64,000 bases of DNA from Takakia lepidozioides. Its lineage: Eukaryota; Plantae; Bryophyta. The notes beneath the pieces are model-generated. The model searched no databases and had not been told where the DNA came from. It saw nothing but the letters and a program-made list of their open reading frames with translations. Below are positions 6,039 through 51,439 of the stretch, one piece after another (the stretch's first letter is position 1; each line of letters starts with the position of its first letter). The stretch spans positions 31,372,001-31,436,000 of the forward strand of contig CM060732.1 of assembly GCA_030704615.1 (NCBI GenBank), given 5' to 3'. The position numbers and the translations under genes are program-made.

Positions 6039-6200
6039 AATCCTTAACTTCCTATGGAACCGTTTTGGGTTTCATAGAACATGGTATATTAACGTAACTT
6101 TTGCAGATCTTAACCAGAGAACAAATCATCGTAAGGTATAGGCCTGCATCCCATAACAAACAAGTCGATGACAGAATCACGCAGAAGATGCGTATGTTAT

Positions 6201-6300
6201 GTACTATGGAATGGGCCGCCACATGACATTGTGGCGGGTAAGGTGGTGGCGAGCCGCCGCGGAAACCGCCATAATGGCATGTTGCGGCCCATTCCAGTAC
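6201..6300. repeat. GC-rich ~100-bp fold-back (small MITE-like or hairpin element)
   Basis: GTACTATGGAATGGGCCGCCACATGACATTGTGGCGG pairs with CCGCCATAATGGCATGTTGCGGCCCATTCCAGTAC. Confidence 0.7.
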
Positions 6301-10759: not shown

Positions 10760-10790
<31 letters not shown>

Positions 10791-12636: not shown

Positions 12637-13419
12637 ATTATATGATTTTTTTGTATCATAATTGATTGACTCTGGCCGAAGCCCTGCATAAATCAGAGCC
12701 ACTTCCCCTTGTGGGCACCACCCCCTGCTGGGGGTAAGCCTCTGTGTGTATATGAGATAAAGTTGCAAGTGATTTCTGTTTCGCACTGGACATAGCATTG
12801 GACTATCTATCGACCAAACCAGTGTGGGGTTTCAGCTACCTTTCTAACCTTCAGGCAATACATAGGTTGACTGATTCATGTTCTGCTTCCTTCCCTTCCC
12901 TTCCCTTTCCTTCCAATATGATCATACATGAAGACTTACCTCCCTTTCCTATGTAACTCACAGGGGCGACATCCAGTCTTTGTGGTCAGTCTTCCAACTG
13001 TACACCCCTCAAGAAAGAAATGTTTGAAGTTCGTTTAACGGCCGCGGATTTACAGCTAAACGAAACATCACAGTCCACATCACAGTCTACAGCCCAGACA
13101 CATCTCAAAAGGAAAGGAAGTTCAATGTCTGGGAGGCGAGAAAAAGACTACAAAGCTCAATCTGAGGGCAGTACTGAGTATAGTATTCTTATGTTGGTGG
13201 CAAAGTCATAGGGGTGTGAGCTGTTGGTTCCAGAGAGGGTGTGAAGATTCTGGAGGCATGCACGCTGGCTGCCGGTGTGTGGACAGACACGATTCGAGTA
13301 TCATGGCCACGACATACTGGTCTGAATCCAACACTGCATGCCTGTACGCCCTAAGTTACTCTACTGTCTGTTGTCTGCCCTCCAAACTGTCGAACACTCT
13401 CTGAACAACCACACTGCTA

Positions 13420-27115: not shown

Positions 27116-28381
27116 CTAGTCATCCTCATCCTCATCCTCAGTGGAGGACTCAGTGCTATCCAATGAGCTTGATGACTCCGCGCCCTTCGCCAGAGCACGT
27201 AAATGAGGCGGCGTTCCCCTAAGTCCCACAGAGCTCTCATCCAATCCCTGGGCATGACCCTCGACCTCATCCATACTAGTGCCATGTAGTGCACTCATCC
27301 CCTCTGTGTTGGCCATGTTCTTCATGAGGGATTGCAAAACCATGCTCCTTGGCGTAGTTGTACTCTACCGGAGATGGCTTCCTCTCAAACGCGCGTTGCT
27401 ACACATGCCACAAATTAAAGTCAGTTCTTCGCGATGATGGAGCCAGAAAGAAGACATAACAAAATCCATAGGGAAGTACGACTTACAAATCGCAAGATAA
27501 AACCCTTGGATCCGCCGGCGCCCCACTTGTGTGTGGATTCATGCTTGTCAAGGCGGACTGATGTTGCTTCGCGTGCCCGGTCAAATTTGGCATTGTTTGC
27601 GGCATCAGTCTCTCCCGCAATGAGTGCATCCCACGATACCTATGCACCCCCCCCCCCCCCCCCCCCCCCAAAATTAGTGAATTACACACATACGTTGCAT
27701 CGAATCCACCTCATTAATGCACATGCGACAAATGGAAGGTGACATGATTCAGGATTTGCCAACCTGTGTAATTCCATAAGGTGGTTTGGGTATGGCCCCC
27801 TTTTCCATTGCCCTCCGAATGATCTGTCTAGCACGGTACCTCCTGTCCTTCAAGTTTCGCCCCACCATCTCCATCACCCTTGTGTCAGTCCAATTGCCCA
27901 GAAACCGGCGGTCTAACTCACGGGCATACGCCCGCTTCGCGCCGAAGTGCTGATCAGCCCACTCGATGTGCAAACGGAACCACCTCAATGCGAGTTCGAA
28001 GGCTGGCTTCTTCATAGCCTCCCAGAACGCACCGCGGGGGTCACCATGGTGATTCACCTCCACCGGTGGCACCACGATCTTTGTCAACTCCACGTCCTGT
28101 ATCGCCAAGGCCATCCCACCCTCTCCCTTCTTTGTAGCCTCCTTCCCCTGCTCCTTTGTTACCCCACTGCCCTCCCCCGCATGCACACTCACCCCTTCCT
28201 CTCCATGGGACTTCTTTTTCTTCTTCTTCTTTTCCTTCCCCTTCCCCGCTACTTCTTCTCTCTCATTCTCCCTCTCCCTTCTCTCTCTCTCCTCGGCAGC
28301 CCCTTCATTGATGGTAAAAGGGATCTCGGGAGATGAAGGCCTCTTCTTCTTACCTTTGGTGTTCGGGTCCTTCATGAACAT
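27116..28381 (-). pseudogene. CACTA second gene (TnpA/Transposase_24-like), 5' end interrupted by the PLE insertion
   Basis: Exons 28381-27764, 27639-27487 and ~27398-27116. Reads ...MVGRNLKDRRYRAR...KPPYGITQ|VSWDALI...HKWGAGGSKGF|QRAFERKPS; the W-x-x-L and H-x-x-G-x-GG pattern is typical of En/Spm ORF2 proteins. One frameshift. Confidence 0.65.
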
Positions 28382-29749
28382 GTTGTACAGCGATAACAAG
28401 CGTGAGACCCGATTCACCTAGGGTTCCACAATTCTCACTAACCTGTTGGTTCTTGTGGGGGCTTGTGATGGGACCAGGTGAGGGTCCTCACTTAGTGTGA
28501 TTTTTAAAGCTTGAATCTGATGACAAACCTGCAAGTGAAGTGACATCGACATCAGCTGATTATCCAGGGAGATGTCTCATTTTTGCCTCACTACATGACC
28601 AATCTGGATATGATTACAACCTTTATCTATGTGTTGAAGCAGCAAGTGCATTAGCGAGCCTTTTTAGAACACATGAATTCTATTAAGGACTCTGGGTTAT
28701 GATTTCCGCTGCATTGAAATATGGTACTGGAAGTAGGGTTTCCAGACCAAATGTATGCTCTTTTTTCATGCTTAGAGCACGATTTGCTACTCTGATATGT
28801 ACACTTTCAAGCAACACGGTAGGGGAGAGGCCAGAGCTTGCATATGGTTTATACTGAGCCCTGTATGCCTTTATGCAATATATGGAACCTCTGTGGATGT
28901 CTGAACCCCCTTTCCTTTTTACCTTGCATACAATCTGCTAAGGTAAGTAACCTGCTACCTCTTCATGTCACTCTGTAATTACAGATTGTATACAGTTGTG
29001 TTTGTGCAAACACCTTGTCAAGGTTGTAACATAATGACCCAAACCTAAACCAGGTCTGGTTGTTTTAAAGAGAAGCCCCTGCTGTTGCTTGGTAATCAAA
29101 GACTGATTAACCTACAACATGGCTCTGGATTTTATGTTACAAAAAAGATAGCTGTGTGTTTTTTGCTAGCTATGGCATATTCTGATACAAAACACTGTAG
29201 TAGAAAGCAGTTCTGGGAAATCAAGCTTACTAAACAATGCAATGAGTTTTGACTCTGTGTCATGATTACAAAAAGTTCTAAAAATGTAGCAGATAAGCTC
29301 TGGGTTTTTGTTATTAAAAAACTGGTTATCTTATCAAGTAACCAGATGATTTAATATCCCGGTTGTGTGATTAATGGAAAATAGCTGGAACTTTTGGGTT
29401 CCAGATTAGCAGTACTATTGCATGATATAGGTAAACATTTAATTGTTTGCTTAGATGCCACCCATAGCTTATAATTCTAAAACAGGCATAAAAACAGGCT
29501 GAACACTTGTTTAGCATACTGTTCCTTAGAATATAAAGCTGGATTATTATAAGGAGGGGATCTTCTAAGTAATCCCACCCGTATTTTCTTGTCATTGAAA
29601 TCTACCAGGTAGATTCTTTGTCTTTGAAATGTAATGGAGGTCCTCATAAGATCTGATTTGAAGTAGAGTTTGACTGATAATGCCTCTTCATGAGGTTGAT
29701 TTGTCGTAAAAATTGACCATGTCCCGACAAGACATAGTATCTTCCCTCT
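28379..29749 (+). repeat. Upstream pseudo-LTR-like direct repeat
   Basis: Near-identical to 41597-43002 (CATGTTGTACAGCGATAAC...GTATCTTCCCTCT), with a few SNPs and small deletions in this copy. Confidence 0.95.
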
Positions 29750-30646
29750 CTTTCCCTTGACCAATGTACTTAGTGGTGTCTGTACACGTTATCAGTCTTA
29801 CTCCCTTCACTTTCCAGATCTGTTTATGATGCACTGCCTTCATTTTTATGGCAGAAGGTGACCAAGCATGTTCCTGAATGGAGTGATGACCTCAAGGCAT
29901 TGGGGTACCAATCCCCTCTTCCCCCTCCGATTCCTGCTGTACAAGCTACCCTCACAAATCACTCCAAGTGATTTTCATTCTACAGTGCAAATGCTGGACT
30001 CTGCAGCTATTAATGATTCAGGTGATGAAAATCCTGTCCTATTGCTTGAGACACTAGCCCTGGAGGATTGGGTAGCCCTTGGAATATGTGCAAACAGAAA
30101 AGGCAGTTACCTTGTAAGACTCAAGGAATACAGCGATAAATTGGTTAAGATATTGGAGCAAGATGCTAGTGAAATGACGTTTTGGGAAAAGAAATGAGTT
30201 GCTATTGAGGAAGCACTCAGAATTGCTAACCCTGATGATGAGCAGTCAGCTCCCACGCAGAAATCCTCCAACACAATGGAAAAAAACTTCATTTCGTCCG
30301 TCACTAACCATCCCATACTCGGGAACATGGTGGTACCAGAAGGGGAATTGGATGCAGTGAGGGACTTCTGTGAACAAGTGGAACTTTCCCAAGTGGAGCA
30401 AGAAAGGGCTGCGGGAGCAACTCCAGGTAACCTGTAGTTTGTCCCTTGGATGCCCCCTAGAGCCGTGGAGCTTGAGGTTGCTAACAACAACCACATGATG
30501 TGGCACCCCCAGGCCAATATCAATCTGATTGCACCCATATCAATTGACATGTGGGTCAAATGGGCCAACCTTACACCTGCTGAACGCAGTAGGTGTGCAG
30601 CAGATGCAAAAGAAGGGATCCAAAGGTTCAAAAAAGAACCTATTGC

Positions 30647-31373
30647 TGTCGCGGCCCTTTGCCTTGAGGGCAGGGGGTCGGGACACATGAGGGGCTGCCC
30701 ATGTGGTGGGGGCAGCGGCAGCGATAGGTATGGGGGGCTGAAGCACCCTTGAGTGCCCAAGGCACTCAAGGAGGCGGAGGCGCTCACTAGGTGGAGCCCC
30801 GCACACCGGGTTGCGGTGGGGGTGGCTCCACAAGGGGTGGTGGTAGCTTAGCGGGACTTAGTGGGGGTGGCATAGGACTCACCATGGGGGCGGAGACCTC
30901 GTGGTGGGAGTCGTGGGGAGTCTTGGGACTCATCACGGTCCATAGGGGTCGTGGTGAGTGGGCCAAGACTCACCGCGACTCATCACCGGGAGTCGAGGGT
31001 TTTCGTGGTGGTTCGCCATAAAATGGCATGGCTGGTTATGAAACCCCCACGGACAGCTACAGAAGTATATATAGGGAGTAGTAACCCCGAGAACGGTGCA
31101 AGCCCGTTGGTGACCAAAAACCAGTGAGTAAGCGAGCGAGCCGGAAAGCGACCAAAAAGTGGGAAGCTGTTCCGGACTACCAACTACCAAAGGGAATTCC
31201 CGCTGGTTCCAAATCGGTGGAGGGTTCTTTGGGAGAACAAAGGGGGACCGTTATGCCCCGGTGAGCAGCCGAAGCTCCAAGTTGGCCAGGCGGCCAGATT
31301 GGGAGTCAGGCGCGCGCATCAAAGCGAGTAACTATGACTTGAGGGGGAGCTTACCGAAGTGAGGTTCGCGACA
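30647..31373 (+). repeat. 5' LTR, copy 1
   Basis: TG..CA ends; about 7 differences from the 3' LTR by eye; TATATA box near 31066. Confidence 0.95.
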
Positions 31374-31428
31374 CTTGGTATCAGAGCCTAGAGTTCAGTA
31401 CGCAATCGTCCTTGGCATTGGCCTCATC

Positions 31429-34400
31429 ATGGGGTCGGGCAAGCCGAAGCGAAAGCGGAACGGCCCAAAAGATGATGATCCTGGTAAGCCCGATGGGGGC
31501 GATGTGTCACGGAGGCGGCCATTTGAGGAAGCGATGCATGTTTCCAAAAACGAGGCCGCTCAAGAGCGGGAGGAATCCGAGGAGTCGGAGCCCGAGGAAT
31601 CCTTGAGAGCTCCGACAAACCAAGAGATGCCTCCCATGCCGGCAGCCTTTTGGGAAGGGTTGTTGGCGCAGTTTGATGGGACGTTGAAAGACGTGTTGAA
31701 GGCGGCTAATGCCACTTCCACTAAGGCAAAGTTTAAGGTGAAGCCTAAGGAACCCGGCACCTTCGAGGGCGTCCGAAATCGGAAGGCACTCAACACCTGG
31801 CTCCTGGAGCTAGAGCAGTACTTCCGGGCGGCCAAGTTGAGTGACGAGGATCGGGTGGAAGTGACTCCCACCTATTTGAGGGGCTATGCTCAACAATGGT
31901 GGCAAAAACGCCTTCACGACCGAGGTCCAAGCCCGGAAACCTTGAACTGGAGTGGGTTCAAGGAATTGATGAAGAGACAGTTTGTGCCCCTCAACGCGTC
32001 CTGGCTTGCCCGGGACAAGATGAGGAATTTGAAGCAAACAGATGACATTCGGGGTATGTCCAGGCTTTCAATGTGCTGTTGCTCGAAGTCGCGGACATGG
32101 CAGAACCAGAAATGGTCTTCAACTTTGTGGCGGGACTGGCCCCATAGGCCAGGCGGAAGTTGGAGGAGAAGCCACCCAAGACTTTGAACGAGGCAATTGA
32201 GAGGGCTGAATGTGTCTCGGATGTCCCTAGGGGTGAGAGACAAGGCCGTACGGAGCTGAACCACAAGAAGACCCGGCGGGAAGGTGACTCCTTCCGACCG
32301 GAAAAGAAGTGGGATAGGCCACGCGACGACAATGGCACGTGGAAATCGAAGGGAGGGCCTTCACACGTCAAGGCGGCACCCGGTGCTTCGAAAGGAAAAG
32401 TGGGTGGAGCGGCTTATGGCGGACAGAAGGCGACCTTTGATGGAGTGTGTTTCAATTGCGGAGAGCCCGGGCACATGGCCAAGAAGTGCACGAAACCTCG
32501 ACAATTGAACATGACTCGGGCAACCACGGAGCTGTCGGAAGATACCATCAGTCGCTTGGTGGAAGCGGTGGTCGCCAGGACTTGCAAGGTAGACAACTAT
32601 TCTTGTGAGTTGTATCAGGAAACTGGCGCCCTGCGTAAAGGGAGTCAGTTATTGTTCGTGGATGGGATAATATCCGGAACTAACGTGTCGTTGTTGGTGG
32701 ACACAGGAGCGTCGCACTCCTTCATGATGCCGGCGGCGGCGCGAAAGTTGGGACTCCCGACAAGTGACGTGGGGGCCTCTATTGAGGTGCGTTCTGCCAA
32801 AGGAGAACCACAGTGGATCTCATTTTGGGGATGACCTTTTTGAGCAAATCCGGAGCGGTCATAGATGGCCGCAAGAGAGTAGTCACGCTGCCATGTGGGA
32901 ATGGTGGCGAGGTCTTACGAGTGTCGAAAACGCCCAAATCCGTGGGAGGGCGAATAAACCTTCTATCAGCAAGGGAGTGGGCCATGGAGGAGGCACACGA
33001 GCCCCAGTTTTTGCTTTACATTAGAGAAGTGAAGGGAGAAGGCGATGGGGAGCCGAGCCCAGATTGGATCAAGGGGATTTTGGAGAAATACCAGGATGTG
33101 ATGCCGGAGGATTTACCAAGCGGCTTGCCACCGCGAAGAGGAGTTGACCACAAGATTGAGGTGATACCGGGATCGGAACCGCCTGCCAAGGCACCCTACC
33201 GGTTGAGCCACAGGGAGTTGGTCGAGCTGAAGACTCAGATCAAGGATCTAATGTCAAAGGGGTACATCCGGACGAGTAAGTCACCTTACGGAGCCCCGGT
33301 GCTATTCGCAGACAAGAAGGATGGGACGCTGCGGATGTGTGTCGATTATAGGGCTTTGAATAAGGTGACTATTAAAAACCGGTATCCTTTGCCAAGGATC
33401 GACGACCTTTTCGACCGGTTGGCAGGAGCGAAGTATTTCAGCCGGATCGACTTGCGCTCCGGCTATCATCAAATTCGGGTGGCGGAAGGAGATGAGGAGA
33501 AGACCGCGTGCAGGACAAGGTATGGTTCATATGAGTTCTTGGTGATGCCTTTTGGGCTCACCAATGCACCTGCGACCTTTAGCACGCTGATGAACAGCCT
33601 TTTTCAGGAGTGGTTGGATGACTTTGTGATCGTGTACATCGACGACATCTTGGTGTACTCGAAAACAAAGGAGGAGCACCTGGAGCACCTCAAAAGGGTT
33701 GCGGGAAGGGAAGCTGTACGCCAAAGTTTCAAAGTGCGAATTTGGGGTCACGAAAGTGGAGTTCCTGGGGCATGTGATTACACACGATGGGATCAAAATG
33801 GATAACAGAAAGGTGAGGGCGATCTTGGACTGGGAGCCTCCGACTTCGGTCCCAGGAGTGCGATCCTTCCTAGGACTCGCCTCTATTACCGGAAGTATGT
33901 GAGAAATTTCGCCAAGATTGCGGGGCCGCTGTCAGACCTTCTGTGTAAATCTAAAGTCTGGGCATGGAACACCTTTTGTGGCCAAGCTTTTGCTGAATTG
34001 AAGCAGCGGATGGCGGAAGCTCCAGTCTTGAAAATCCTGGAGTTCGATCGTCCGTTCGAGATACATACAGATGCCTCGGACTTCGCGATTGGGGGTGTAC
34101 TGATGCAAGATGGACGTCCAGTGGCTTACGAAAGTAAGAAACTGAATGAAGTGGAGCGACGGTGGCCGACGCACGAGAAAGAGATGAAGGCGGTGGTGCA
34201 CTGTCTTGAGCTTTGGCGCCACGATGTTGGTTCCAACCCAGTGAAGGTGTTCACGGACAATGTCACGGTGAAGTATTTTGCCACGCAGCCCAAGTTGTCC
34301 CCAAAACAACTTAGGTGGCAAGATACTTTGGCGGTGTTCGACGTGGATATCCAGTACAAACCGGGACGAGACAATGTGGTGGCCGATGCCTTAAGTAGAA

Positions 34401-35887
34401 AGCAGCAGCTCTTGTTGGTGTACAAGGGCGAGACGGCGCTCCAAAGGAAGATCCGGAAGGCTTGCCGGAAGGATGAACTGGCGAAGTCCGTGATGCAGGA
34501 CTTGAGGATGGGGGTTAAATCGCAGTTCCACTTGCAAAATGGACTGCTCCGGTATAAGCAAAAAGGTCTCTACGTGCCGAAGGGAGGGATCAGAGATAGC
34601 CTCTTGAAAGAATGCCATGATAGCCCGCTTGCAGGCCACAGCGGAGCCAAGCGCACTGCGGCACTCTTGAAGAAAGAGTATTTCTGGCCCAAACTGAGGG
34701 AGGAGGCAGAGGAGTATGTCAAGACATGCACCACATGCCAACAAAACTGGAGCGAGTACAAAAAGCAAGCGGGGCTGTTACAACCCTTGCCGATCCCAGA
34801 GGGGACTTGGGAAAGCGTCTCGATGGATTTCATGACTGCTATGCCGCTGTCAAAAGGATTCGATGCAATCATGGTGGTGGTGGATAGGTTCAGTAAAATG
34901 GGCCATTTCATCCCCACCAAGGAGACGGCAACGGCGCAGGAGACAGGACGACTTTACTTCGCCCACGTCTTAAAGCATCATGGAGTCCCAAAGGATATTG
35001 TCTCGGACCCCCAAAGTTTACGAGTAAATTTTGGAGGGCACTTTGGAAGAAGATGGGGACGAGGCTGAAGATGAGCACCGCCTTCCGACCTACGACCGAC
35101 GGCCAAAACAGAAAGAGTGAATTCCGTAGTGAAGCAGATCTTGCAGAATTACGTGTCGGCAGACCAAACAGACTGGGTGGAACACTTAGACGCGGCAGAG
35201 TTCTGTTATAATAACACAGAACACTCCGCAACGGGAGTTTCCCCTTTCGTATTGGTCTATGGAAAAGCACCTCTGGTGCCGACAAGTTGGGCCGCCCAGG
35301 ACGTTGAGGAACCGGCAGTAGCGGCGGTACTGGAAGAACGCGAGCGTTTGTTGAAGCTCGCAAAGTACAACATTGCCAAAGCTAGGAAACGGTATGAAAG
35401 GCAGTCGAATCGGAAGCGGAGGGAAGTGAAGTTTGAGGCAGGCACGGAGGTCTGGTTGAACATCAAGAATTTCCGACTACCTCTGGAAGTGAGTCCGAAG
35501 TTCGTACCTCCGTATACGGGCCCCTTTCGCATTCGGAAGGTTATGAATGAGGATGTGTATGAATTGGAGCTGCCGGCAAACAGCAAGGTGCACCCAGTAT
35601 TCCATGTCTCACTTTTGAAGCCTTACTTCAAATATGAAGCGCGTCCGAATCGGCATTAAGTGTTGCGTCCGCCACCTATGCTGTTGGATCATGAAAATGA
35701 ACCTGAGTACGAGGTGGAGGCAATACTTAAGTCGAGGAGGTTCAAGAACCGAGAAACGGAGTATCTCGTCAAATGGAAGGGCTATCATCATGTGGAGGCA
35801 TCTTGGGTGCGTGCCTCAGAAATGGGAAACGCATCCGAGGCGGTTGCAGCTTTCGAAGGGCGACCTCCAAAGCGGAAGAAGCGTTGA
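31429..35887 (+). pseudogene. gag-pol (gag, CCHC knuckle, protease, RT, RNase H, integrase, chromodomain), disrupted
   Basis: [69 protein letters not shown]. Several frameshifts, a ~90-bp protease deletion at ~32812 relative to copy 2, and a premature stop at 35657. Confidence 0.95.
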
Positions 35888-36791
35888 TGGGGACATCAAC
35901 TTTGGAGCGTGGGGGAGGAAATGCATGCTTAGCCCGGCTTAGCTAGCTTAGGAATCCGATTGCAAAAACTTATATTGTACAAAACGTGCTATAAATGAAA
36001 TGGCTTCCAAATGTTGTGCATCCTATTTTGTTTGGAATGGTGATGGATGGTATGGTTGGCTAGTGTGTAGAATGCATGCTAGCTTATAAAAGTGGGAGAG
36101 GTAAATTGGGTTAATCGTGTGTTTGCGTAGTGCCGAAATCGGGTGACCCCCATCCAAGGGGCAAGGAAACTTGCGCCTTCTTTGGGAGTTCACGTGCTAG
36201 TGCGCACCTGCCGCGTGCGCGTACTATAACTGCGCTACCGAGGGGGTTGCCTTGTAGTGCGGGCTAACGCGGAAGCTACGTGCTTCCGTTCACGTACTAT
36301 AATCGTGTAGCCTCGGGACGAAGTCGTAGTGCGGCTTCGGCGTGTTCCCGTACCTCAGGCCAGCATTCCAAGGCGGACCCAATTGTAGTGATTGGGGCGC
36401 ACGGTTGGTTCAAGGTTATCTTCCCAGTCAAAGAGGGTTCCAGGGAACCCTTGCTCAAGGTGATGCCAAAAGCGGCATCATGAGCGGTCACAAGCAATGT
36501 TGTTGCAGTAAGGCGATTCGATCCTCGGGGAGGATCGTTCCTTGGCCTTGAAGTAGGCTAAGAAGAGTGCACTGGGAGGAGCTGGAGAGGCTCCACCTTT
36601 GGCCGGGACTTGGAGGAAGTCGGCCGAACTAGCTAGTGGAGAGTAGAGTCAAGTGTGGGGTTTGGTTCTTTGCCATGGGACGCCATGGTACGGAAACAAA
36701 CTCCTTGATGTGGGACGCCACAACTTGGATGTTCGTTTCTACAAAATGGACAAGTCGATGAGGACATCGACTCCCTGTTGGTAGGGGTGTG

Positions 36792-37517
36792 TGTCGCGGC
36801 CCTTTGCCTTGAGGGCAGGGGGTCGGGACACATGAGGGGCTGCCCCTGTGGTGGGGGCAGCGGCAGCGATAGGTATGGGGGCTGAAGCACCCTTGAGTGC
36901 CCAAGGCACTCAAGGAGGCGGAGGCGCTCACTAGGTGGAGCCCCGCACACCGGGTTGCGGTGGGGGTGGCTCCACAAGGGGTGGTGGTAGCTTAGCGGGA
37001 CTTAGTGGGGGTGGCATAGGACTCACCATGGGGGCGGAGACCTCGTGGTGGGAGTCGTGGGGAGTCTTGGGACTCATCACGGTCCATAGGGGTCGTGGTG
37101 AGTGGGCCAAGACTCACCGCGACTCATCACCGGGAGTCGAGGGTTTTCGTGGTGGTTCGCCATAAAATGGCATGGCTGGTTGTGAAACCCCCACGGACAG
37201 CTACAGAAGTATATATAGGGAGTAGTAACCCCGAGAACGGTGCAAGCCCGTTGGTGACCAAAAACCAGTGAGTAAGCGAGCGAGCCGGAAAGCGACCAAA
37301 GAGTGGGAAGCTGTTCCGGACTGCCAACTACCAAAGGGAATTCCCGCTGGTTCCAAATCGGTGGAGGGTTCTTTGGGAGAACAAAGGGGGACCGTTATGC
37401 CCCGGTGAGCAGCCGAAGCTCCAAGTTGGCCAGGCGGCCAGATTGAGAGTCAGGCGCGCGCATCAAAGCGAGTAACTATGACTTGAGGGGGAGCTTACCG
37501 AAGTGAGGTGCGCGACA
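36792..37517 (+). repeat. 3' LTR, copy 1
   Basis: Matches 30647-31373. Confidence 0.95.
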
Positions 37518-38323
37518 ATTGATGTTTCTTGGCCATTGAAAACCTTCTACTACAAGCTCTGTGAGAAAGGGGACAACATGACTCTAAGGACAAAGAATGA
37601 CATGCCTATTGGTTCAACAAGGTCTCGGAACCACAAGAGTCAGTTGTTTAACTGGCATAGGCCATACATCAGATGTAATTGTGGATCTGGAGGTGCGCCG
37701 TCATCTTGTATGGGAAGTGTTGCTTGGTTTGACCACCTTGTGTGGTTCATGCTCAACAATCTGACGGTGTTCTTCCCCAATGATGCTTACCCATCTATAC
37801 AGGCAAAGTATTACAACTTCTTGGTATGGATGATGAAAGCTGCCAGAGATTATCATGGAGGCCGCATGCGAATTTGCTGCAGAACCTAATGCTAAATTAC
37901 TTAGCAAAATGGGTGAAGCAAAAGGTGCCAGATATGTTGAGAAGATGATTAAGCCTGGAGCTTTTTCTGACAGCCTTCCAAAACCACAATTCAGTGGCTA
38001 CAAAAGGCAGCGCCCGGATGGACAAACTCCTCTGCAGCAAGGCAAGACTGGTAACAACAGAGGCAGAAGCACACCTGTAAGAGGCAGAGGCTCGTACCAA
38101 AGAGGTGGGTGCTCTGGCCGTGGGCAGCATTCTAACAACAACTCTGACAGCTCGAAGATGATGACCAGAACTCCTTTTGGAGGTTCAGGTTCCAGTTCCA
38201 GCACTGCTATCAATATCGCCAGCCAAGAGCCTTTTCGAAATAGGCAAGGCAACGGGGAGTTCTCCCCAATCCACAAGAGAGACTTCAACTCGTGGATGGA
38301 CTTGTAACCGCCTCTCTCATGGT

Positions 38324-40570
38324 ATGCAACTCTACTTTGGTTGTGCAGATGAAATGTTTTTTCAAGAAGATGGAATCAGAAGAATTGAGATACATGCCTG
38401 GAACTTCATCACCCATGCATCAAAACCAGCCCCAATTGGTTTTGTACACATGGTGTACCCTAACCAGGCTATGGAATGGATAAGTCCTAAGGGTATGATA
38501 AAAGAAGCATTTTTGAATTTCGGACATAATGACCTGGCTATGTTAACTGAGGAAGTGATGTTTGGATGGACATACCATAAACAGAGTAGTACAAAGTACT
38601 ATATGCCTGCATCTATTTTTCGTGACTTTAACTTCCTACCTGATCTGATTGAATCTCCCCCTTGCCTCTGCAATACAGCCAAGAGGTTCAAGGCTTTTTG
38701 TGATGTGGATACTTTGACTGAGATTCAAATAACTGATTCTGCCCCCATACAACATGTCAGAACTATGGATCTGAACATTATAAGACATCCCAAGCTGAGA
38801 GAACTCTTCAGCAGGTATGAACCACATTCCACTGAAAAAAACCTTAATAAAGGATGTTGTTATAGAGATAGCTTCTGCCTTCTCTAAAACATGTGACATT
38901 CTTCATGTGAACATTTCAGAACCTTGGATAGTAGAATGCTGTCAATGGTTGAAGGTTACATGTTGGGACAGGCTGAAGAAAAAAGCCAGTTTGACATGGT
39001 GCAATTACTCTCATCATGAGGGTAACCCACTTGTCAAAAAAGAAGCTCGGGAGGAACTGGATTGGCTTCTTAAACACTTGTACATGTCTGGTCTTGATAA
39101 GGCTAACAACAACGTATGTTTTCTTTGTGTGAAGCACATCCGAACCCAAGCTTATCACCGGCTTATGGGTAAGGATTTCAAACCATGCACCCAAAATGAG
39201 GTATGGTCATCACCTGATTCAGTCTTGGAAAGCCTGTTTACTGAGGTACAGAATCTGATCCCTGAAGTTGAGGTGGCTTTTTGTAGTCTTCCCTACATGA
39301 TGGGAATATACAAGCTACACAAAAAAAAGTACCGTTGGATTACCAATGCACATAATTGTGTGTTCAGTGAAATTACTTGTCTTCTTACACGTGCCACTAT
39401 GTTCCTATTACCCTTGGTCAAGGAATGGGCCAAAGCACGTTTAGACACCTACAAAGAATTTTTCAAAGTGTCTACTGCCATGTATTGGATTATAGACAAC
39501 ATCACTGATTTCACTTTAAACCTCTCTGTATAAATCTATGATATGTTTGTGGCTGACATTACCAGTGCTATGAAAACATCCCTTTGGCAGGTGATGATAA
39601 TCTGGGTGATGCTATTGAATTCGTGATCAAAATTGCTTTCCAGCAATATCATGTAAACCACCCAAGGTCACATCACACCATTTGGATCCAAACCAAAAAC
39701 GGGATCTTCGAGAAGTGCAAGTGGAGTCTTTCTTCCCCAAAGAATGGTACTTGGATAGAGCTTCCTAAAGCCAAGTTGCTTCAGCTCCACAAGTGGTTGA
39801 TGTCCCACTGCTTCGTAGCATTGGGTGACCGTGTTTGGCATCAAGTGTCAGGTATTCCTATGGGATTTTCGTGTTCACCATTATGGTGCAACATATATTT
39901 CCTTTCCTATGAGCTTAAATTTATCTTGAGACTGGCAGCTCTTGGACAATATCAATTGATGCCTAAGTTTCAATATGCTTTCAGATATATAGACATCTGC
40001 TGGCTTAATATTGGCAATGCTATGTTATTCCTTAATCCTGACGCAGACAGGAGTAGCAGTAATCCATGGTGGATTTACCCATTGAATGTTGTGGAAATCA
40101 AACATGAATTGTTGAGAACCAAGCCAGGATCCCAATATGAAGGTTTGGAAGCCTGTTTTATGAACATTCAGATCTCTGTGTTAAACCCAGACTCAGGTGA
40201 GTTTCAATTTCAGAAATATGATAAGAGAAGACTCTTGCCTTTCTCCTATACTCAGTATATCCAGTTCTTATCCAATAGACCTGTGAATCAATCCTACAAT
40301 GTAGTGATTTCACAAGCCTTTCCGATTTTGTATATTTCCAGCAATGTTAATCTTGCTTGGAATGAATGCTATATTCTCATACATACCCTTGGGAGGAATG
40401 GTTTCAAAACCAAAAAACTAACCCGGATTTTGATAAGTTTCCTTGAGCAGGGCTCCTTCCCTGGTCTTTTCTTCCCTTTACAAGAGCTCATTGAAAGATT
40501 AAAAGGTACACTCTGCACTCATTCTTACATGATTGTATACATTTTTCCTTTGCAGTTTTTCTTTTTTTGA
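38324..40570 (+). pseudogene. PLE-type reverse transcriptase (ORF2), frameshifted
   Basis: PCLC..HVRTMDLNIIRHPKLRELF, GLDKANNN, LPYMMGIYKLHK..RWIT, ADIT/CYENIP, GIPMGFSCSPLWCNIYFLSYE, FRYID(-)ICWLN, KYDKR..F, SNRP..SYNVVISQ, L.RNGF. This is the motif order of PLE RTs, especially Naiad/Chlamys. One catalytic Asp codon is missing; frameshifts at ~38810 and ~39565; stop at 39531. Confidence 0.85.
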
Positions 40571-41596
40571 CCATGGGAGATGTGAGCGTAGACCTTCATA
40601 TCCATCTGGTTTTTCTAAAATAGAAAAACCAGCGATGAAGACTACAAAGAGAAGGGAGAGTTTTTATGAGAATGGGTCTGGTATGCACTCCCTTACGGGG
40701 TGAGTGCATACCACACTCATCCCATAAGGGAATGCCATACCAGGGGCTGGCTGGTGGGATCCCTCTCTCTCTCCCTCTGTACATGGATCCTGTTGGTAAC
40801 CTATTCCATAACCCAGAGGGTTTGGTACTAAGGTAATTTTTTACTAAACTATAATTAATTTTCTGCTATCTTCATCCATACCGGATATAGTTAATAATGG
40901 ATGAATTCCATTAAATGTTAATTATGGTTATCATTTTTTACCTGGTTCCTTTGGATTATTAAGGTCATTTATATCTAACCCTAATGAATGCCAGGTTCTG
41001 GTCATCGATTTTAGGATGTCATCCCTGCTGGATGACATGGCGATGACAACAGGGGAATATTCACCTTTCATTCCTTATTTTTCATCCCACATGGATGAAA
41101 TCGCAATGGTTTGCCATATTTCCTCTCCTGCCATAAAACTTGCACGATACTGTGCGTTTTTTCTACGGGAGATGAAGTGATGGTGTCAGAGGGATCTCTT
41201 AGCACGAATTTTATGATTTTGATGGCTATGGAGACGCTTCAATGCTGTTTACAAGTACTCTGGCAAGATTCCAGTCCTTTCTCATCTCCCTTGGGAGGCG
41301 TAACGACGGCGGTGCTTCAATTCCCTCAGTATGGTGACCTATTCCCTTGGTGGGCAATCTACCTTAGGCTGCCCGACTGCTTGTAGATCCTCTCTGGATC
41401 ATTAAGTTTCAGCACTGCTCATAAAAACTTAGGGGGTTTCTTCACCTGTTAAAATGCGCATAGATTTCAAGCAAACCATTGCTTGTTTGTGCTGTTGATT
41501 GTCAAGTGCTTGGAGCGATGTCGAGTCCTCTTCCGCAATCGATTAAGGTTGTGGATAACCTTGCTTGTGTTTAGAACTGATTCTTGCTTTAGAACT

Positions 41597-43002
41597 CATG
41601 TTGTACAGCGATAACAAGCGTGAGACCCGATTCACCTAGGGTTCCACAATTCTCACTAACCTGTTGGTTCTTGTGGGGGCTTGTGATGGGACCAGGTGAG
41701 GGTCCTCACTTAATGTGATTTTTGAAGCTTGAATCTGATGACAAACCTGCAAGTGAAGTGACATCGACATCAGCTGATTATCCAAGGAGATGTCTCATTT
41801 TTGCCTCACTACATGACCAATCTGGATATGCTTACAATCTTTATCTATGTGTTGAAGCAGCAAGTGCATTAGCGAGCCTTTTTAGAACACATGAATTCTA
41901 TTAAGGACTCTGGGTTATGATTTCCGCTGCATTGAAATATGGTACTGGAAGTAGGGTTTCCAGACCAAATGTATGCTCTTTTTTCATGCTTAGAGCACGA
42001 TTTGCTACTCTGATATGTACACTTTCAAGCAACACGGTAGGGGAGAGGCCAGAGCTTGCATATGGTTTATACTGAGCCCTGTATGCCTTTATGTGCTCAA
42101 TATATGGAACCTCTGTGGATGTCTGAACCCCCTTTCCTTTTTACCTTGCATACAATCTGCTAAGGTAAGTAACCTGCTACCTCTTCATGTCACTCTGTAA
42201 TTACAGATTGTATACAGTTGTGTTTGTGCAAACACCTTGTCAAGGTTGTAACATAATGACCCCAAACCTAAACCAGGTCTGGTTGTTTTAAAGAGAAGCC
42301 CCTGCTGTTGCTTGGTAATCAAAGACTGATTAACCTACAACATGGCTCTGGATTTTATGTTACAAAAAAGATAGCTGTGTGTTTTTTGCTAGCTATGGCA
42401 TATTCTGATACAAAACACTGCAGTAGAAAGCAGTTCTGGGAAATCAAGCTTACTAAACAATGCAATGAGTTTTGACTCTGTGTCATGATTACAAAAAGTT
42501 CTAAAAATGTAGCAGATAAGCTCTGGGTTTTTGTTATTAAAAAGCTGGTTATCTTATCAAGTAACCAGATGATTTAATATCCCGGTTGTGTGATTAATGG
42601 AAAATAGCTGGAACTTTTGGGTTCCAGATGAGCAGTACTATTGCATGATATAGGTAAACATTTAATTGTTTGCTTAGATGCCACCCATAGCTTATAATTC
42701 TAAAACAGGCATAAGAACAGGCTGAACACTTGTTTAGCATACTGTTCCTTAGAATATAAAGCTGGATTATTATAAGGAGGGGATCTTCTAAGTAATCCCA
42801 CCCTCCCACCCGTATTTTCTTGTCATTGAAATCTACAAGGTAGATTCTTTGTCTTTGAAATGTAATGGAGGTCATCATAAGATCTGATTTGAAGTAGAGT
42901 TTGACTGATAATGCCTCTTCATGAGGTTGATTTGTCGTAAAAATTGACAATGACCATGTTTGGTCCTGTCCATGTCCCGACAAGACATAGTATCTTCCCT
43001 CT
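41597..43002 (+). repeat. Downstream pseudo-LTR-like direct repeat
   Basis: Matches 28379-29749. Confidence 0.95.
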
Positions 43003-43073
43003 ATTTTTTGCTGTTCACAAAAGTAAACAAACCACAAGGGAGAGAGGGTGCAGAAAAAGTTAAAAGATAGTAC

Positions 43074-44267
43074 TCATAAGACGTTGTTTGTCGTAGCCTT
43101 GTGGCCATTGACCCCGCGCCCAGGTTGAGCGGAAAGAAAAGGGACAGAACCTGCCTCTGTCAAGGGCTGACGTTGGTAGTAAGACTTACCTTCATATATA
43201 GAATTAATCTGGGTTTTCCAGATATCCTCTAGAAATCCCTTCACACAAGCATCAAACTGTTGTGTGTGATTTGCCCAATAACTAGGCCTCAGGAGGGCCT
43301 GGGCTTTTGGCTCAGCCTTGAGACTTTCAAAGTTGGAAAACAGAGGTATAGTCACAATTCCCTTGATAGATTTGAAGAGAGCGTCTCTTTGGTGAGAGAA
43401 CCCCGGAGAGTGTATCAGAAAAATGTGTACTGTCTTCAGATTGCCCACACAACGGACAATTGCACTCTCCCTTTCCTCTCTGCTTCAGTTTCATGTTCAA
43501 ATGTAGGCTTCCTGCCCTGAGTTTAAATTTCAGTCTAGTGTCGAGAGTGGGTAGACCCTCTTACTACCAACGTCAGCCCCTGACAGAGGTAGGATCTGTC
43601 CCTTTTGTTTCCCCAAGAGAGGGGGCAACAAAGAAAAACAGAGAATGTGGGGGGGGGGGGGAGTGACTGAGCAGCAGCAGCTGCTGCTCAGTCACTCCCC
43701 CCCCCCCCACCTTCTTTTCTTTTCTTTGTTGCCCCCTTTTGTCTCCCTCTCACTCCCTCTCTCTGTCCCTCTTTGTCCCTCTCTCCCTCTCCCTCTCTCT
43801 CCCTCTCTTCTGTGATGCTCTCTTTTAAGCTCCCGACACCCTAAATTCAAGGTCAGATGGTGGGTTCAGCTGCAACATATGTCCAACACCAGATATCCTA
43901 AGTTAATCGACTCTATATCTTGGAAACAGGACCGCCCTGTCAAACAGGTTGAGCCCTTGGAGAAGAGAGTAAAAGAGATTCTCAAGGATCTGAATCTGGA
44001 CCCGCAAGTCTTGACCTTGCTGGATAAACCTGACTTAGAGAGTGTAGTGTCCAAAGCCATGTCTGTTACCAGAAAATTGTCCGATGAAAATGAAGTTAGG
44101 AAGAAAACTTCCCTGAACCTATTTCCAGTCTCTAACATGAGGGAGGACATCATGGATGCGCTCAAGGGTCTATCCCACTCTTGGCACCAGACCTAAATTT
44201 AAAGTCAGGGCAGGAAGACTACCTTTGAACAATAAACAGCAGCAGAGAGGAAAGGGAGAGTGAAATT
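43074..44267. pseudogene. Non-LTR (LINE) post-RT thumb/zinc-finger fragments in opposite orientations
   Basis: Plus strand 43843-44267: KVRWWVQLQHMSNTRYPK...KGL/KFKVRAGRLPLN. Minus strand 43560-43190: KFKLRAGSLHLN..CPLCGQSEDSTHF/LIHSPGFSHQR..FLEDIWK. 43458-43560 is the diverged reverse complement of 44165-44267. Confidence 0.6.
43620..43737. repeat. Strong palindrome/hairpin
   Basis: GGGGGCAACAAAGAAAA..GTG(G)nAGTGACTGAGCAGCAG-CAG-CTGCTGCTCAGTCACT(C)nCAC..TTTTCTTTGTTGCCCCC. Confidence 0.92.
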
Positions 44268-47273: not shown

Positions 47274-50200
47274 GACTTTGTCCATTCCTTCCCGGTCTTT
47301 TCTCTTGGCATCCCATCCGAAAACAACCCAAGTACATCAGGCGGGAGCCTTGGGCGAGACGCCGCCCCCACGGTACTGAACGATGATGACGATGACAGTG
47401 ATAGTGACATTGACAACAACAATGAGCATGGAATTAACCAGGAGGATATGCAAGCCATGTAGGATCTCTTAATGCATCATGTGGGCGCTGATGTGTCCCA
47501 TGAAGAGGGAACCCGGGCAATCGATGATCCTGAAATGGCCCCCTCAAATGACATGGAGAGGGAGGCGAGAACTCCCTGGTACGAAGGGGCGAAAGTGAGT
47601 CGACTTTCAACAATCTTATTTTTGCTCAATCTTCAAATTCGATTTGACATAAGTAATGTTGGGATGTCTGCCATAATGCGAACTATTGCAGACTATATCC
47701 TTGCTCCACACTTGAAACCCAAGATGCCACGGTCGCGGAAAGAGGCGTGCGAAGTCTTGGACTATGTGGGGATGGGCTATAAGAATTTGCATGCATGTCC
47801 ATGTGATAAAACCCTATACTACGGAGATGATTCGCATCTCACCAAGTGCCCAAAGTGCAAGAAAGACCGATATTGGGATGATGTCCAAGGGAAAAAAGTA
47901 CCACGCAAGGTATAAGCACCATTCCCCCTCGCATGAAGATTATTAGAGAGTAGTACTCATGCAAGATCTGATTGTGGTTTTGGAAGGAGTGAGTGAGGAG
48001 TGGAAGGAGCGACGTTTGGTTTTGACCATTCACACCCAAATGAGGGAGAGGTTGCATAAAGGGAAAGGCATAAAGGTGTTGTATTGTGTGTGCTAATGGG
48101 ATGATTACATGTGGGGGGCGTGGGGTATTTCATCCTAGAAAATGCATTACTTTCCGATCATCCCGCGATTGAGGGCACAGTACCGAAGCCCCGAATTGGC
48201 CAGACTCATGAGATGGCACGCCTCGCATCGGAGCCCCCCGGGAAAGGTGTGCGGGCCACAAGATTCACAAGCATGGAGGCATATTGAAGAGATGTGGCCT
48301 TTTCTCTTGGAGGACCCACGACATGTCCACCTCGGCTTTTCCTCGGATGAGGTCAACCCATTCTCTGTCCAGTCATGTAGTCATTCCACTTGGCCGGTGA
48401 CCATGTTGAATTACAACATCCCTCCGTATCTTTCAATTAAAAAAGGCCATATCATATTGGCTGCCATTGTGCCAGGTGAGTGTACTTATTTCATGTTTAT
48501 TATTGCCTTCGACTTTACATTAAACTTCTGATCTTTGACGCAATTTGGATGCAAGATTGATGAGTGACATAATCATGGAGTAAGACGTGTAATTCATTTT
48601 GTAGTATAATCTGCATATTGGTGGAGCATTGAAACAATGATGTGAATGTCTCAAAGGGAAAAAACAAGTGGCAAACATGGACATGTACTTGCGACCTCTT
48701 GTTGATGAACTTAAAGAGCTATGGAGGGGGGTCCCGGCATTGGATGCTTCACTTGACCCTATGGCCGGACAATCTTTTCAGATGAGAGACATCTTGCTTT
48801 GGACAATGTATGATTATCCAGGTATATTATGTTCCCCATGAACAACCCGCGTACATTCACTTGTCAATGCTGGATGAGGATGAGGATTGGAATTGATTGA
48901 AGTAGCGGCGACAGTCTTGTGCACCGTAGTGGGGTAGATGGCATTATGGGCCATGCACATGACAACTTTTTGTTTTTGCTAATGTGGCGGGATGTGTAGT
49001 ATAGGACTAACTGTTTGCTTGGGGCTAAGCACCAAAGGGTACCATGCATGCTTGCATTGTGACGATGATCTTGATGCACATAGCTCCCGTCATCTTCACA
49101 AGATGGTGTATCCCAACTACCACAAATTTCTTCCTATGAGCCATCGATGGAGAAGAAGAGAGAAACACTTGTTTGATGGTAAAGAGGAAGTACGTTCCCC
49201 CCCCCCCCCCCCTATATCACTGTCCGGGCAGTTTTGGGAGGACCGATGGAAGGAGGCCCATGTGGGCACGGACGGTGAAGTGGACGTGCCCGTCATGAAA
49301 CGACTTTCAATCTTCTACGAGTTGCCATATTGGGCAGTACATATTCCACAAAAACACCGTCAATATTCCTATGCATGCATGTGATATTGCACATTTGGTA
49401 TGCGTTGCATTGTCACTTTTACGTAAATTTTTTTGTGTAAGTCTTTGTGGGTGGGGATATATGTAGGACCTAAAGATTCGCCATCTTCTAGATCCCATGC
49501 ATATTGAGAAGAATGTCTGCTCGTCATTTTTTTGGGTTCTTCATGGCACGCCGACAAAGAAGAGAGTGGCTGCAAAAGGAGATTCTCTCGGTGTTAGAAA
49601 GGAGCTTGAGGAGCAGGGTCGCATGCCCCATCTATGGGCCGAACAAAATGGTGTGGACCCAAAGGGTGTTGTATGGTGGAAGTATAGGCGCGCACCTTGG
49701 CAATAGACAAAGGAGGAATACAAGAAAGTGATAGCCACCATAAGTGCTGTCCGAACACCAACTGGTTATGGGTCATCCCTCCGAACGAAGTTCAGCGAAG
49801 AAGACGGGGTCCATGGTTTGAAGTCTCATGACTACCACAATCTATTGCAAGATATCTTGTCCATTGTAGTACGTGGGACATTGACTCCCGAGGTTCGTGA
49901 GATAATCTATAGTTTGGAAGGTTTGTTCCGGTGGATTTGCTCCAAAGAGTTGGAAGAAGCAGATTTTCCACGCATGAAGAAGGAGGCGGCGGAGGTAATG
50001 TGTATGTTGGAGATGCACCTTTCTCCCTCCTTCTTTGACATCCAAGTGCACTTGGTAGTGCACTTAGTGGAAGAGGCTTCGATTGCCGGCCCCGTTCATT
50101 CTCGGTGGATGTACTTCCTTGAGCGTTATATGAAGACTTTGAAAGGATTTGTAAGACAAATGGCGCACCCGGAGGGTAACATGGCGGAGGGGTATACGTT

Positions 50201-51439
50201 GCAAGAAGCTATGTTCTATTGCACGGAGTACATGGCAAGGGTGGATGAGGAATCCCCTCGGATGTGGAAGGAAGAGGAGGATGCACGAACCAAAGATATT
50301 GTTTTGCCCAAAAAATCGAAGAGGGTAAAATTGCCGACCTTGGTGATTGAGCAAGCGCATGCTTTCATACAGAAGAACACCTCATCCATACATGAGTGGG
50401 AGACAAGATACAATAATCTTGTTCAGCAACGAGAGGAGGAGATGCTTGCATGGAGGCGGAACCATCCAAGGCCGGTTACTAGACGCCCACGACGAGGAGC
50501 GGGCCGCCGGAATGTTCTTTCACAAAATTTGCCCATGGAATTGCAGCCTCTAAGTTCATTCCAATAGTGGCTTCGGACTTCAGTTTATGACGCCGTTGCT
50601 GAAGGAGAGGTGGTTTCAGTTTTGGTGCAAGACATTGCAAGGGGCCCCTCTCAATTCGCGACCTCATACACGGCGGTTTGGGTTCATGGTCGTCATTTCC
50701 GCATTCGTGCTCTTGACATGAAGCGCAAAACAACCTTTGATTCTGGCTTGTGTGCCACATATTGGCAAGACTCCGTGTGGGGCAAGGGAGATACACGACC
50801 TGCTATGAGCAAACTTGAGTACATTGGAGAGCTTGAGAGCATACTCCAACTTCAGTATACAAGGTACCGGCCTCTTCTCTTCAAGGGAAGGTGGTTCCAG
50901 CCACATCTTGTGGGGCCCTCCACAACACTAGTGCAAGATGATTGTGGTTTCATGCGCGTCAATGCAGATAGGCTCAACCCTACTCATCGTCCTTCTGATG
51001 AGCTTTTTTCACGGCCTTCAGACATGGAGCAAGTTTTCTCCTCCGATGACAAAACAAGGGGAGAGAATTGGAAGGTGGTTGTGCATGCTCAGCCAAGAGG
51101 AAGACGTATTATCATGGTCTCGGATCTCCATGGGGTGAGGCAATTCCGGTGGACGGAGAGACTGGTCATAATGATGCTGATGATAGAGGTTGGGTAGAGG
51201 GGGTAGAAGAGGATGATGACGCCCCGGACAGTGCATCCTGGACCCTATATGATGAAGCTCTAGAAGATACGGATGTTGGAGAAGGAGACGAAGACACGGC
51301 CATTGACAACGAGGTGGAGGATGATTCGGAGGTGCCTTTTGAGAGCCGGGCCATTTATGACGATGACTCCGATGACGAAGAAGACTTGCAGCTTGATGAG
51401 GATGAAGAGGCTCCGGATGATGATGTTCAAGTTGATTAG
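47274..51439 (+). pseudogene. CACTA transposase (TnpD/Tnp2; Transposase_21, DUF4218, DUF4216-type regions)
   Basis: Exons ~47274-47909, 48139-48476, 48656-48821, 49005-49336, 49468-51439. Motifs HACP..CPKC, YFPIIPRL, LGFSSDEVNPF, STWPV, YLRPLVDELKELW, YDYPG, RHLLDPMHIEKNV, LKSHDYH, FFDIQVHLVVHL, GPVHSRWMYFLERYMKTLK. In-frame TAG stops at ~47460, 49704 and 50565. Confidence 0.95.

Follow-up and report, generated by a model that had tools for sequence, protein, structure and literature searches.

A decayed Penelope-like retroelement with long direct repeats and no detectable endonuclease in the moss Takakia lepidozioides

The element and its two reading frames

We analysed a 64-kb window of the Takakia lepidozioides genome (contig CM060732.1, positions 31,372,001 to 31,436,000), which carries on its plus strand a Penelope-like retroelement (PLE) bounded by long direct repeats; all coordinates below are positions in this window. 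A BLAST self-comparison shows two pairs of direct repeats within 26-46 kb. The outer pair encloses the PLE, in which a first open reading frame (ORF1) is followed by a second (ORF2) for a reverse transcriptase (RT), and the inner pair consists of the long terminal repeats (LTRs) of a Ty3/Gypsy retrotransposon that splits ORF1 and is foreign to the PLE.

The 5' direct repeat (28379..29753) corresponds to the last 1375 bp of a terminal repeat that we call L. The 3' copy of the repeated part (41597-43006) lies within an inferred full-length L of 2244 bp (40763..43006), placed by position, as the L of related elements starts at a microsatellite following a G-rich box (G-box). The G-box and a (CT)n-like tract of the window element occupy 40736-40780; the 3' L would open with this tract (40763-40780) and continue into an upstream part (40781-41596) that the 5' copy does not contain. 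The 5' repeat is a shortened version of this L of about 2.2 kb, without its first ~835 bp, and it opens exactly where a conserved leader block, described below, begins. The two copies are 98.2% identical by BLAST with gaps counted, and their global alignment has 12 mismatches over 1375 bases plus four indels (Kimura two-parameter distance 0.0088). They open with CATG and close with TTT, so that TG..CA ends are not present, in agreement with the initial annotation of this locus, which had described near-identical direct repeats of this kind around the element.

Three ORF pieces between 38177 and 40570 translate to all the RT motifs quoted in that annotation, namely CLC (CLCNTAKRF), HVRTMDLNII..LRELF, DKANNN, LPYMMGIYKLHK, GIPMGFSCSPLWCNIY, FRYID and YDKR, and motifs and homologues together place ORF2, a broken frame for a TERT-like PLE RT, at about 38324..40570. 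Frameshifts lie near 38808-38848 and 39563, and FRYIDD has become FRYID-I, with the loss of one catalytic Asp. We translated the broken ORFs of the window piecewise or put X where the frame breaks, with natural intact relatives as stand-ins. A database search with the last RT piece returned 58 proteins at ~50% identity (E down to 1e-102), one of them from the moss Ceratodon purpureus. The intact Ceratodon copy (locus L001) has an ORF2 of 667 residues, which as a query retrieved a large family of ~700-residue proteins with hundreds of members. In an alignment of 32 relatives the CxC pair (C108, C110), DKA (D252, K253, A254), GIPMG and FRYIDD/YIDD are invariant, and about 100 residues separate D405 from G505 (RT motifs A to B), forming helices and strands in the model, a candidate counterpart of the insertion in fingers domain of TERT. 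The CxC pair, DKA and the long insertion between motifs A and B bear out a Naiad/Chlamys type of RT.

Pfam gave no match to the window RT pieces, RVT_1 stayed below threshold in intact relatives (24-28 bits versus a cut-off of 29.6), and sequence searches of the PDB gave no match. An AlphaFold model of one member of the ORF2 family (mean pLDDT 82) was more informative: in a Foldseek search of the PDB its top 17 matches are all TERT (E from 5e-10). VIA-align superposed the same model on TERT with Z 11.4-14.8 over residues 77-724 (human TERT 322-1076), versus Z 9-11 and the core only (residues 288-710) for group II intron, retron, LINE-1 and HIV RTs. In the model, then, the best-matching fold is that of TERT, the signature expected for a Penelope-like RT, and ORF2 is predicted to consist of a region like the telomerase RNA-binding domain, an RT domain with a long fingers insertion, and a thumb/C-terminal extension. 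With the TERT-like fold and the CxC, DKA, GIPMG and YIDD family motifs, the Penelope-like identity first assigned to the element stands. Upstream of the MEW that starts the RT homology, the ORF2 N-terminus (~38340-38440; columns 50-95 of alignment A1) has a conserved beta-rich segment of ~45 residues with the pattern D-x-[YL]-G-R ... G-[FY]-[IV]-x3-Y-x-[SN]-R-A-[LM]-E-W, where model confidence is low.

ORF1 was located by tblastn with its Ceratodon counterpart. Its 5' part (29858..30646) has a frameshift near 29953-29961 and stops at 30195 and 30435; its 3' part (37518..38124) holds the core domain, a frameshift near 37846 and then an RG-rich tail. The damage to ORF1 thus amounts to two stops, at least two frameshifts and the Gypsy insertion. 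The pieces match a 581-residue ORF upstream of the Ceratodon RT that defines a protein family of 520-600 residues with no Pfam domains, so the separate upstream ORF1 that had been proposed is real. The most conserved stretch of the family reads RPYLRCxC..GC.G...WFDH; the corresponding CxCX8C motif of the window, CNCGSGGAPSSC, lies in the core at 37674..37709 as CNCX8C, and its cysteines (C320, C322, C330) are invariant in alignment A2. With both ORFs broken and YIDD short of one Asp, the window copy is inactive and dead.

The ORF1 model is confident over residues 11-432, where helical bundles and two long helices are followed by three short strands that surround the cysteines and then by more helices; the C-terminal 160 residues are disordered and Arg-Gly rich. 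Foldseek against the PDB returned nothing at E up to 0.001 and the best Z of a wide VIA search was 5.7, to helical bundles, so no solved structure was matched. Two independent observations hint weakly at a GRF-type zinc ribbon; one is a match in the atlas to ORF1 residues 250-367 (TM 0.54 by target), the other a sub-threshold Pfam match on the cysteine motif of the Chara homologue. ORF1 had been called gag-like, and the coiled-coil helices, the Cys-rich, zinc-ribbon-like module and the disordered RG-rich tail loosely suit this term; a fold match to any Gag, on the other side, was not obtained. A capsid row for ORF1 in language-model and atlas look-ups was unconvincing.

Related elements and their shared architecture

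Used as a profile in an exhaustive search, the RT alignment collected 4777 proteins. The nearest named relatives are gene models of Chara braunii, for example GBG83558.1 (989 residues), and Selaginella moellendorffii EFJ12422.1 (967 residues), which were found with E values of 1e-115 to 1e-127. In these Chara and Selaginella proteins the ORF1 core is fused to the RT: hhalign matched ORF1 profile A2 to their N-terminal extensions with probabilities of 99.2% (Chara) and 95.8% (Selaginella). No fused ORF1-RT protein was seen outside the Chara and Selaginella gene models. In a quick maximum-likelihood tree the window RT falls in a clade (99% SH-aLRT) with Ceratodon and the other two-ORF elements, with Selaginella and Chara outside.

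Craig, Yushenova, Rodriguez and Arkhipova (2021, PMC8557442) described endonuclease-minus (EN-minus) PLE-X families (PLE-X1_sTam and relatives) from Chara and spike mosses within the Chlamys group of PLEs. These have CxC, are missing GIY-YIG, and have at the N-terminus an extension unique to them, which contains CxCX1-8C and is likely joined across an intron; moss BlastP matches to PLE-X were recorded in the same work (PMC8557442). Profile search and tree both group the RT studied here with the Chara and Selaginella proteins, presumably members of these EN-minus families. Because the taxa and the architecture of its nearest named relatives match PLE-X, the lineage, as far as sequence comparison goes, is already described, and the initial proposal of a possibly undescribed plant PLE lineage cannot be kept. 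Searches of the literature brought up no later work that describes the moss-type elements. Nor did we find described the separate ORF1 and ORF2, the fixed arrangement of repeat, internal part and repeat (L-A-L) in eight families, with L of 1.2-2.2 kb bounded by pyrimidine microsatellites, the conserved leader block in L ending in ATGGG-N3-AG/GTGAG (slash, putative splice junction), or the blocks conserved at either end of the internal part.

The relatives compared were two Ceratodon elements (Ceratodon A and Ceratodon B, L001), five loci from one plant assembly in ENA (L002-L006), and metagenome contigs (L007-L017) holding three further families. L-A-L was seen in both Ceratodon elements, L002, L003-L006, L007, L010 and L011-17. 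L measures 1.2-2.2 kb and is 95-100% identical within a copy, and the internal part (A) of about 4.2-4.5 kb contains ORF1 and then ORF2. In six intact relatives ORF1 stops 14-130 nt before ORF2, in varying frames. Ceratodon A (5850-12804 of locus L001, which is CM026427.1 1-14381) has 99.9% identical repeats and both ORFs open. The window repeats are no chance segmental duplication, as L-A-L recurs in eight related families.

The repeats might also be pseudo-LTRs of the classic PLE kind, with an upstream repeat that is what random 5' truncation left of a second tandem copy and that has no defined start. Partial tandems are typical of PLEs (PMC8557442), and the 5' repeat of the window is indeed shorter than the 3' L. 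Four copies of one family (L003-L006), however, have identical extents of 6600 bp and repeats of 1205 bp, which rules out random truncation of tandem tails for their repeats. Each family keeps its repeats at a fixed length, and the 5' repeats of the window and of L007, which come from different species, begin at the same conserved block (the L007 repeat is contig-limited). We consider random truncation very improbable. The 5' L of L010, for comparison, is 2.19 kb long and starts at its own (CT)n.

The boundaries of L are marked by several conserved features. In each family one pyrimidine repeat of its own, (TC)n, T-rich or (TCT)n, is found at both the start and the end of L. A hairpin 12-14 nt after L is common to all families, its position kept and its stem sequences family-specific; a weak form of it occurs in the window at 29765..29785, at the same distance as in the relatives. 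The 3' end of A in the families is a conserved hairpin-capable block and a ACCAGGGGTGG..GGYGGG box that touches the first base of L; in the window a hairpin-capable segment and a ACCAGGGG..GGTGGGA box make up this block at 40664..40762 (alignments A3 and A5). In alignment A5 (window 40672-40766 and relatives) the 5' strand CCUGGUGUG has two possible partners further downstream, both copies of CACACCAG; with one it forms a local hairpin, with the other a long-range helix, which RNAalifold prefers, and the block is possibly an element with alternative structures. Covariation in the terminal hairpin of A did not exceed that in shuffles.

The hairpin-capable block with the G-box (40664-40746) and the splice-donor block (41682-41733) also stand out in the depth of host DNA contigs, which exceeds that of adjacent bins by factors of tens to hundreds; contig depth is usable as a hint of copy number, not for placing element ends. 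The deep bins suggest that many related or non-coding partner elements share both blocks.

A leader block of ~110 nt within L is conserved in all eight families. In the window it occupies 28379..28477 of the 5' repeat, with an ATG at 28468 and a donor-like CAG/GTGAG at 28477/28478 (alignment A6), and 41597..41695 of the 3' repeat, with an ATG at 41686 and a donor-like site at 41695/41696. Its 3' end is an invariant ATGGG-N3-AG/GTGAG in 8/8 families, always with 10 nt from the ATG to the junction, and contains what is by sequence a consensus 5' splice site. In the young copy Ceratodon A the first in-frame ATG of ORF1 comes only at about residue 236. An in-frame AG acceptor lies at the very start of the ORF1 open frame in Ceratodon A, L003 and L007, and by frame arithmetic on these natural relatives a join from the leader would give MG(V/T) followed by the conserved N-terminus. 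This suggests that the leader block supplies the start codon of ORF1. L would then consist of a leader exon with this start codon and a remainder that is intron, and the unspliced RNA would serve as the template. Such a retained-intron template is compatible with what is known, because intron retention has been described for PLEs (PMC8557442). N-myristoylation of the putative 'MG' start was considered and discarded, residue 6 being unsuitable in two of three families, and so was the AG in the hairpin at the start of A as the acceptor, as the in-frame acceptors lie further downstream.

Insertion sites and a proposed life cycle

The initial annotation had seen neither a nuclease nor telomeric repeats, and our searches agree with it. 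GIY-YIG had no Pfam match in the window pieces, in intact relatives or in the long Chara and Selaginella models, and no other nuclease had one in any ORF tested at E up to 0.1-1. RNase H and integrase were likewise without Pfam matches in the PLE ORFs of the window and its relatives, which upholds the statement that neither belongs to the element, and tyrosine recombinase had none in any ORF. L shows no conserved coding potential across families, and its ORFs contain no Pfam domain. Rfam E-value scans of the window, L001 and L002 returned no hammerhead or other ribozyme, and a motif scan for the hammerhead core CUGANGA..GAA was also negative. CCCTAAA/TTTAGGG repeats were found neither in nor beside the window element. 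The related copies lie internally in long contigs and are dispersed, not telomeric.

At seven complete insertions there was no regular target-site duplication (TSD); L006 has a 15-nt flank duplication with filler. The pyrimidine motif at the end of the element runs on into the 3' flank in 5/9 insertions. Ceratodon A is inserted exactly in the (TC)n that opens the 3' repeat of the older Ceratodon B, which is self-targeting of the family's own microsatellite, and the 5' junction of the window element has a CATG microhomology. The pyrimidine flanks, the insertion of A in B and this microhomology would all fit priming by pairing between the 3' end of the RNA and a DNA 3' end.

A nuclease might still be used: ORF1 or the beta-rich N-terminus of ORF2 could hide one, or another element could provide it in trans. 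The dispersed, non-telomeric copies, the flank duplication of L006 and the conserved Gly/Tyr-rich beta strands at the ORF2 N-terminus are in keeping with this. The Pfam searches were blank for nucleases even at permissive E values, though, the best PDB matches of ORF1 are helical bundles at Z 5.7 or less, the sole domain-level hints concern GRF-type zinc ribbons, which are nucleic-acid binders and not cutters, and the N-terminal segment of ORF2 is too short for a full GIY-YIG. We therefore hold a hidden or borrowed nuclease to be highly unlikely.

The ends of L are regular enough to bring to mind true LTRs made by retrovirus-like strand transfers, with the minus strand primed beside the 5' repeat, the plus strand primed at the G-rich box, and integration by a host enzyme or one acting in trans. 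Repeat boundaries that are exact and identical in four copies are what such transfers would leave; the polypurine-like G-rich box directly before the 3' repeat and the conserved hairpin after the 5' repeat, present in all families, could act as the priming sites, and L resembles a promoter part joined to a transcribed part. The RT, in contrast, is of the TERT/PLE type, RNase H, integrase and TG..CA were not found, the seven insertions show no regular TSD, and the missing upstream part of the window 5' repeat is accounted for more simply by end-to-end copying of an RNA. This alternative is unlikely, if somewhat less so than the two considered above.

We prefer a life cycle in which the RNA would start at the leader block. 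Splicing would join the leader to ORF1 and so supply its start codon, and the unspliced RNA would be the template. The cDNA would be primed on a pre-existing DNA 3'-OH paired with the pyrimidine-repeat 3' end of the RNA, with no nuclease of the element's own, and a homology-guided template switch would then add the upstream part of L, giving full L-A-L. The window copy would be a product without the final template switch, an end-to-end copy of the RNA, and the proposed absence of this switch would explain a 5' repeat that begins with the leader block. As the upstream part of L is missing, the window copy was probably promoterless from its insertion. The Gypsy element entered its ORF1 later. 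This mechanism of integration is one that we infer from the termini, the flanks and the frames.

Overall, with a probability of roughly 0.7, we read the window element as a dead, endonuclease-less PLE of the PLE-X kind, on the Chlamys/Naiad side, with canonical L-A-L architecture and the life cycle proposed above. Within this reading, the anatomy, the homologies, the TERT-like fold, the decay of the copy and the failure to detect a nuclease, ribozyme or telomere repeat are matters of observation. A broader proposal is more tentative, and we rate it as possible but doubtful: that the moss-type PLE-X use a nuclease-less, TERT-like RT to spread genome-wide by microsatellite-like pairing of the RNA 3' end, rebuild a promoter-bearing repeat by template switch and take the ORF1 start from a spliced leader, and would so have evolved, independently and on a target-primed TERT-related enzyme, an LTR-like life cycle.

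Several points weigh against the favoured reading. The RT tree is midpoint-rooted and was built without reference PLE clades or TERT. Canonical hammerheads were reported for PLE-X by Craig et al. (PMC8557442), and none was found here. The window L is unalignable with that of other families outside the conserved blocks, the missing 835 bp are argued by position and not by homology, and a later deletion could be the alternative. A scan of JGI contigs for spliced junctions of one family gave 0 matches, and the sequencing runs that contain the window element are all DNA, with no RNA run among them. In-frame acceptors are expected by chance in one third of AGs, so that the splice model draws its main support from the absent ATG and the invariance of the donor. 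Finally, the ORF1 fold search was made with the whole model, in which a small cryptic nuclease fold may have gone unrecognised.

Known systems and neighbouring sequences

Compared with PLE-X, the element shares CxC, DK(A), a long insertion between motifs A and B, the lack of GIY-YIG and a CxCX1-8C module upstream of the RT. It differs in that this CxC..C module appears to be part of a separate ORF1 of ~550 residues with its own stop and an RG-rich tail, and not an intron-joined N-terminal extension, and in its dispersed insertions, which are not in 28S rDNA, the absence of a canonical hammerhead from our scans, and its fixed-length, microsatellite-bounded repeats with a leader block. The EN-plus Chlamys and Naiad PLEs have a similar CxC linker and an insertion in fingers to which the long insertion here may correspond, lack a canonical hammerhead and show pseudo-LTRs and microsatellite association, but they carry GIY-YIG, which is not found here, and the ORF1 is additional. 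As for PLEs in general, terminal direct repeats are present in the window and in all eight families; their fixed length is atypical of PLE pseudo-LTRs, and the hammerhead of pseudo-LTRs was not found.

Athena and Coprina have no endonuclease either and are proposed to prime on an exposed DNA 3' end through repeats at the RNA 3' end. They are telomere-associated, with reverse-complement telomere repeats and hammerheads, whereas the elements studied here have neither and end in CT-type or T-rich sequence. By analogy, priming of the window element may represent the telomere logic of Athena and Coprina moved to internal sites. Penelope of Drosophila virilis resembles it in its pseudo-LTRs and in a retained intron in the 5' region (cited in PMC8557442), and differs in having a C-terminal GIY-YIG and a single ORF. 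LINE-1-type elements are bicistronic too, with a coiled coil and a nucleic-acid-binding part in ORF1, an RT in ORF2 and 5'-incomplete, dead-on-arrival copies, but here the RT is of another clade, there is no APE or RLE nuclease, and the direct repeats are terminal. LTR retrotransposons are set apart by their TG..CA ends, TSDs of 4-6 bp, RNase H and integrase, none of which was found in the PLE, and DIRS/Ngaro elements by the tyrosine recombinase, to which we had no match, and by the TERT-like RT of the present element.

How EN-minus PLE-X insert genome-wide without a nuclease is a question left by Craig et al. The dead window copy led to young, intact, multi-copy relatives with repeats 99.6-99.9% identical in Ceratodon purpureus and in the ENA plant assembly. 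The fixed ends of these relatives, with their leader block, hairpin-capable blocks and microsatellite termini, offer testable handles on nuclease-free insertion and also bear on primer choice by telomerase-like enzymes.

The nested Ty3/Gypsy element (30647..37517, plus strand), a young one recognised by its LTRs and Pfam domains, has LTRs of 727-731 bp at 30647-31377 and 36792-37521 and Pfam matches to gag, PR, RT, RNaseH and IN. A string resembling a primer-binding site, TGGTATCAGAGC, reads as the initiator-tRNA-Met type, and the insertion is flanked by a 5-bp TSD (ATTGC/ATTGA). The LTRs have 6 differences over 727 positions, a divergence close to that of the outer repeats, and therefore the two insertions are similar in age; the Gypsy element landed in the outer element after the latter had inserted.

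The insertion had further been placed inside a CACTA gene, which we could not confirm: ORFs at the junctions of the element gave no Pfam match, and the domains typical of a CACTA (En/Spm) transposase, DUF4218 and DUF4216, are in ORFs at 49728-51197 on the plus strand. Directly 3' of the PLE, at 43070-43744, lies a very high-copy repeat whose contig depth is ~1000x that of single-copy parts. A near-perfect 120-nt palindrome at 43615-43744, outside the PLE, gives many sub-threshold matches to microRNA families, which are the sole Rfam rows. In the metagenome contig L007, a gene fragment with a Replitron_HUH domain (9000-9230) is located ~1.4 kb downstream of the PLE.

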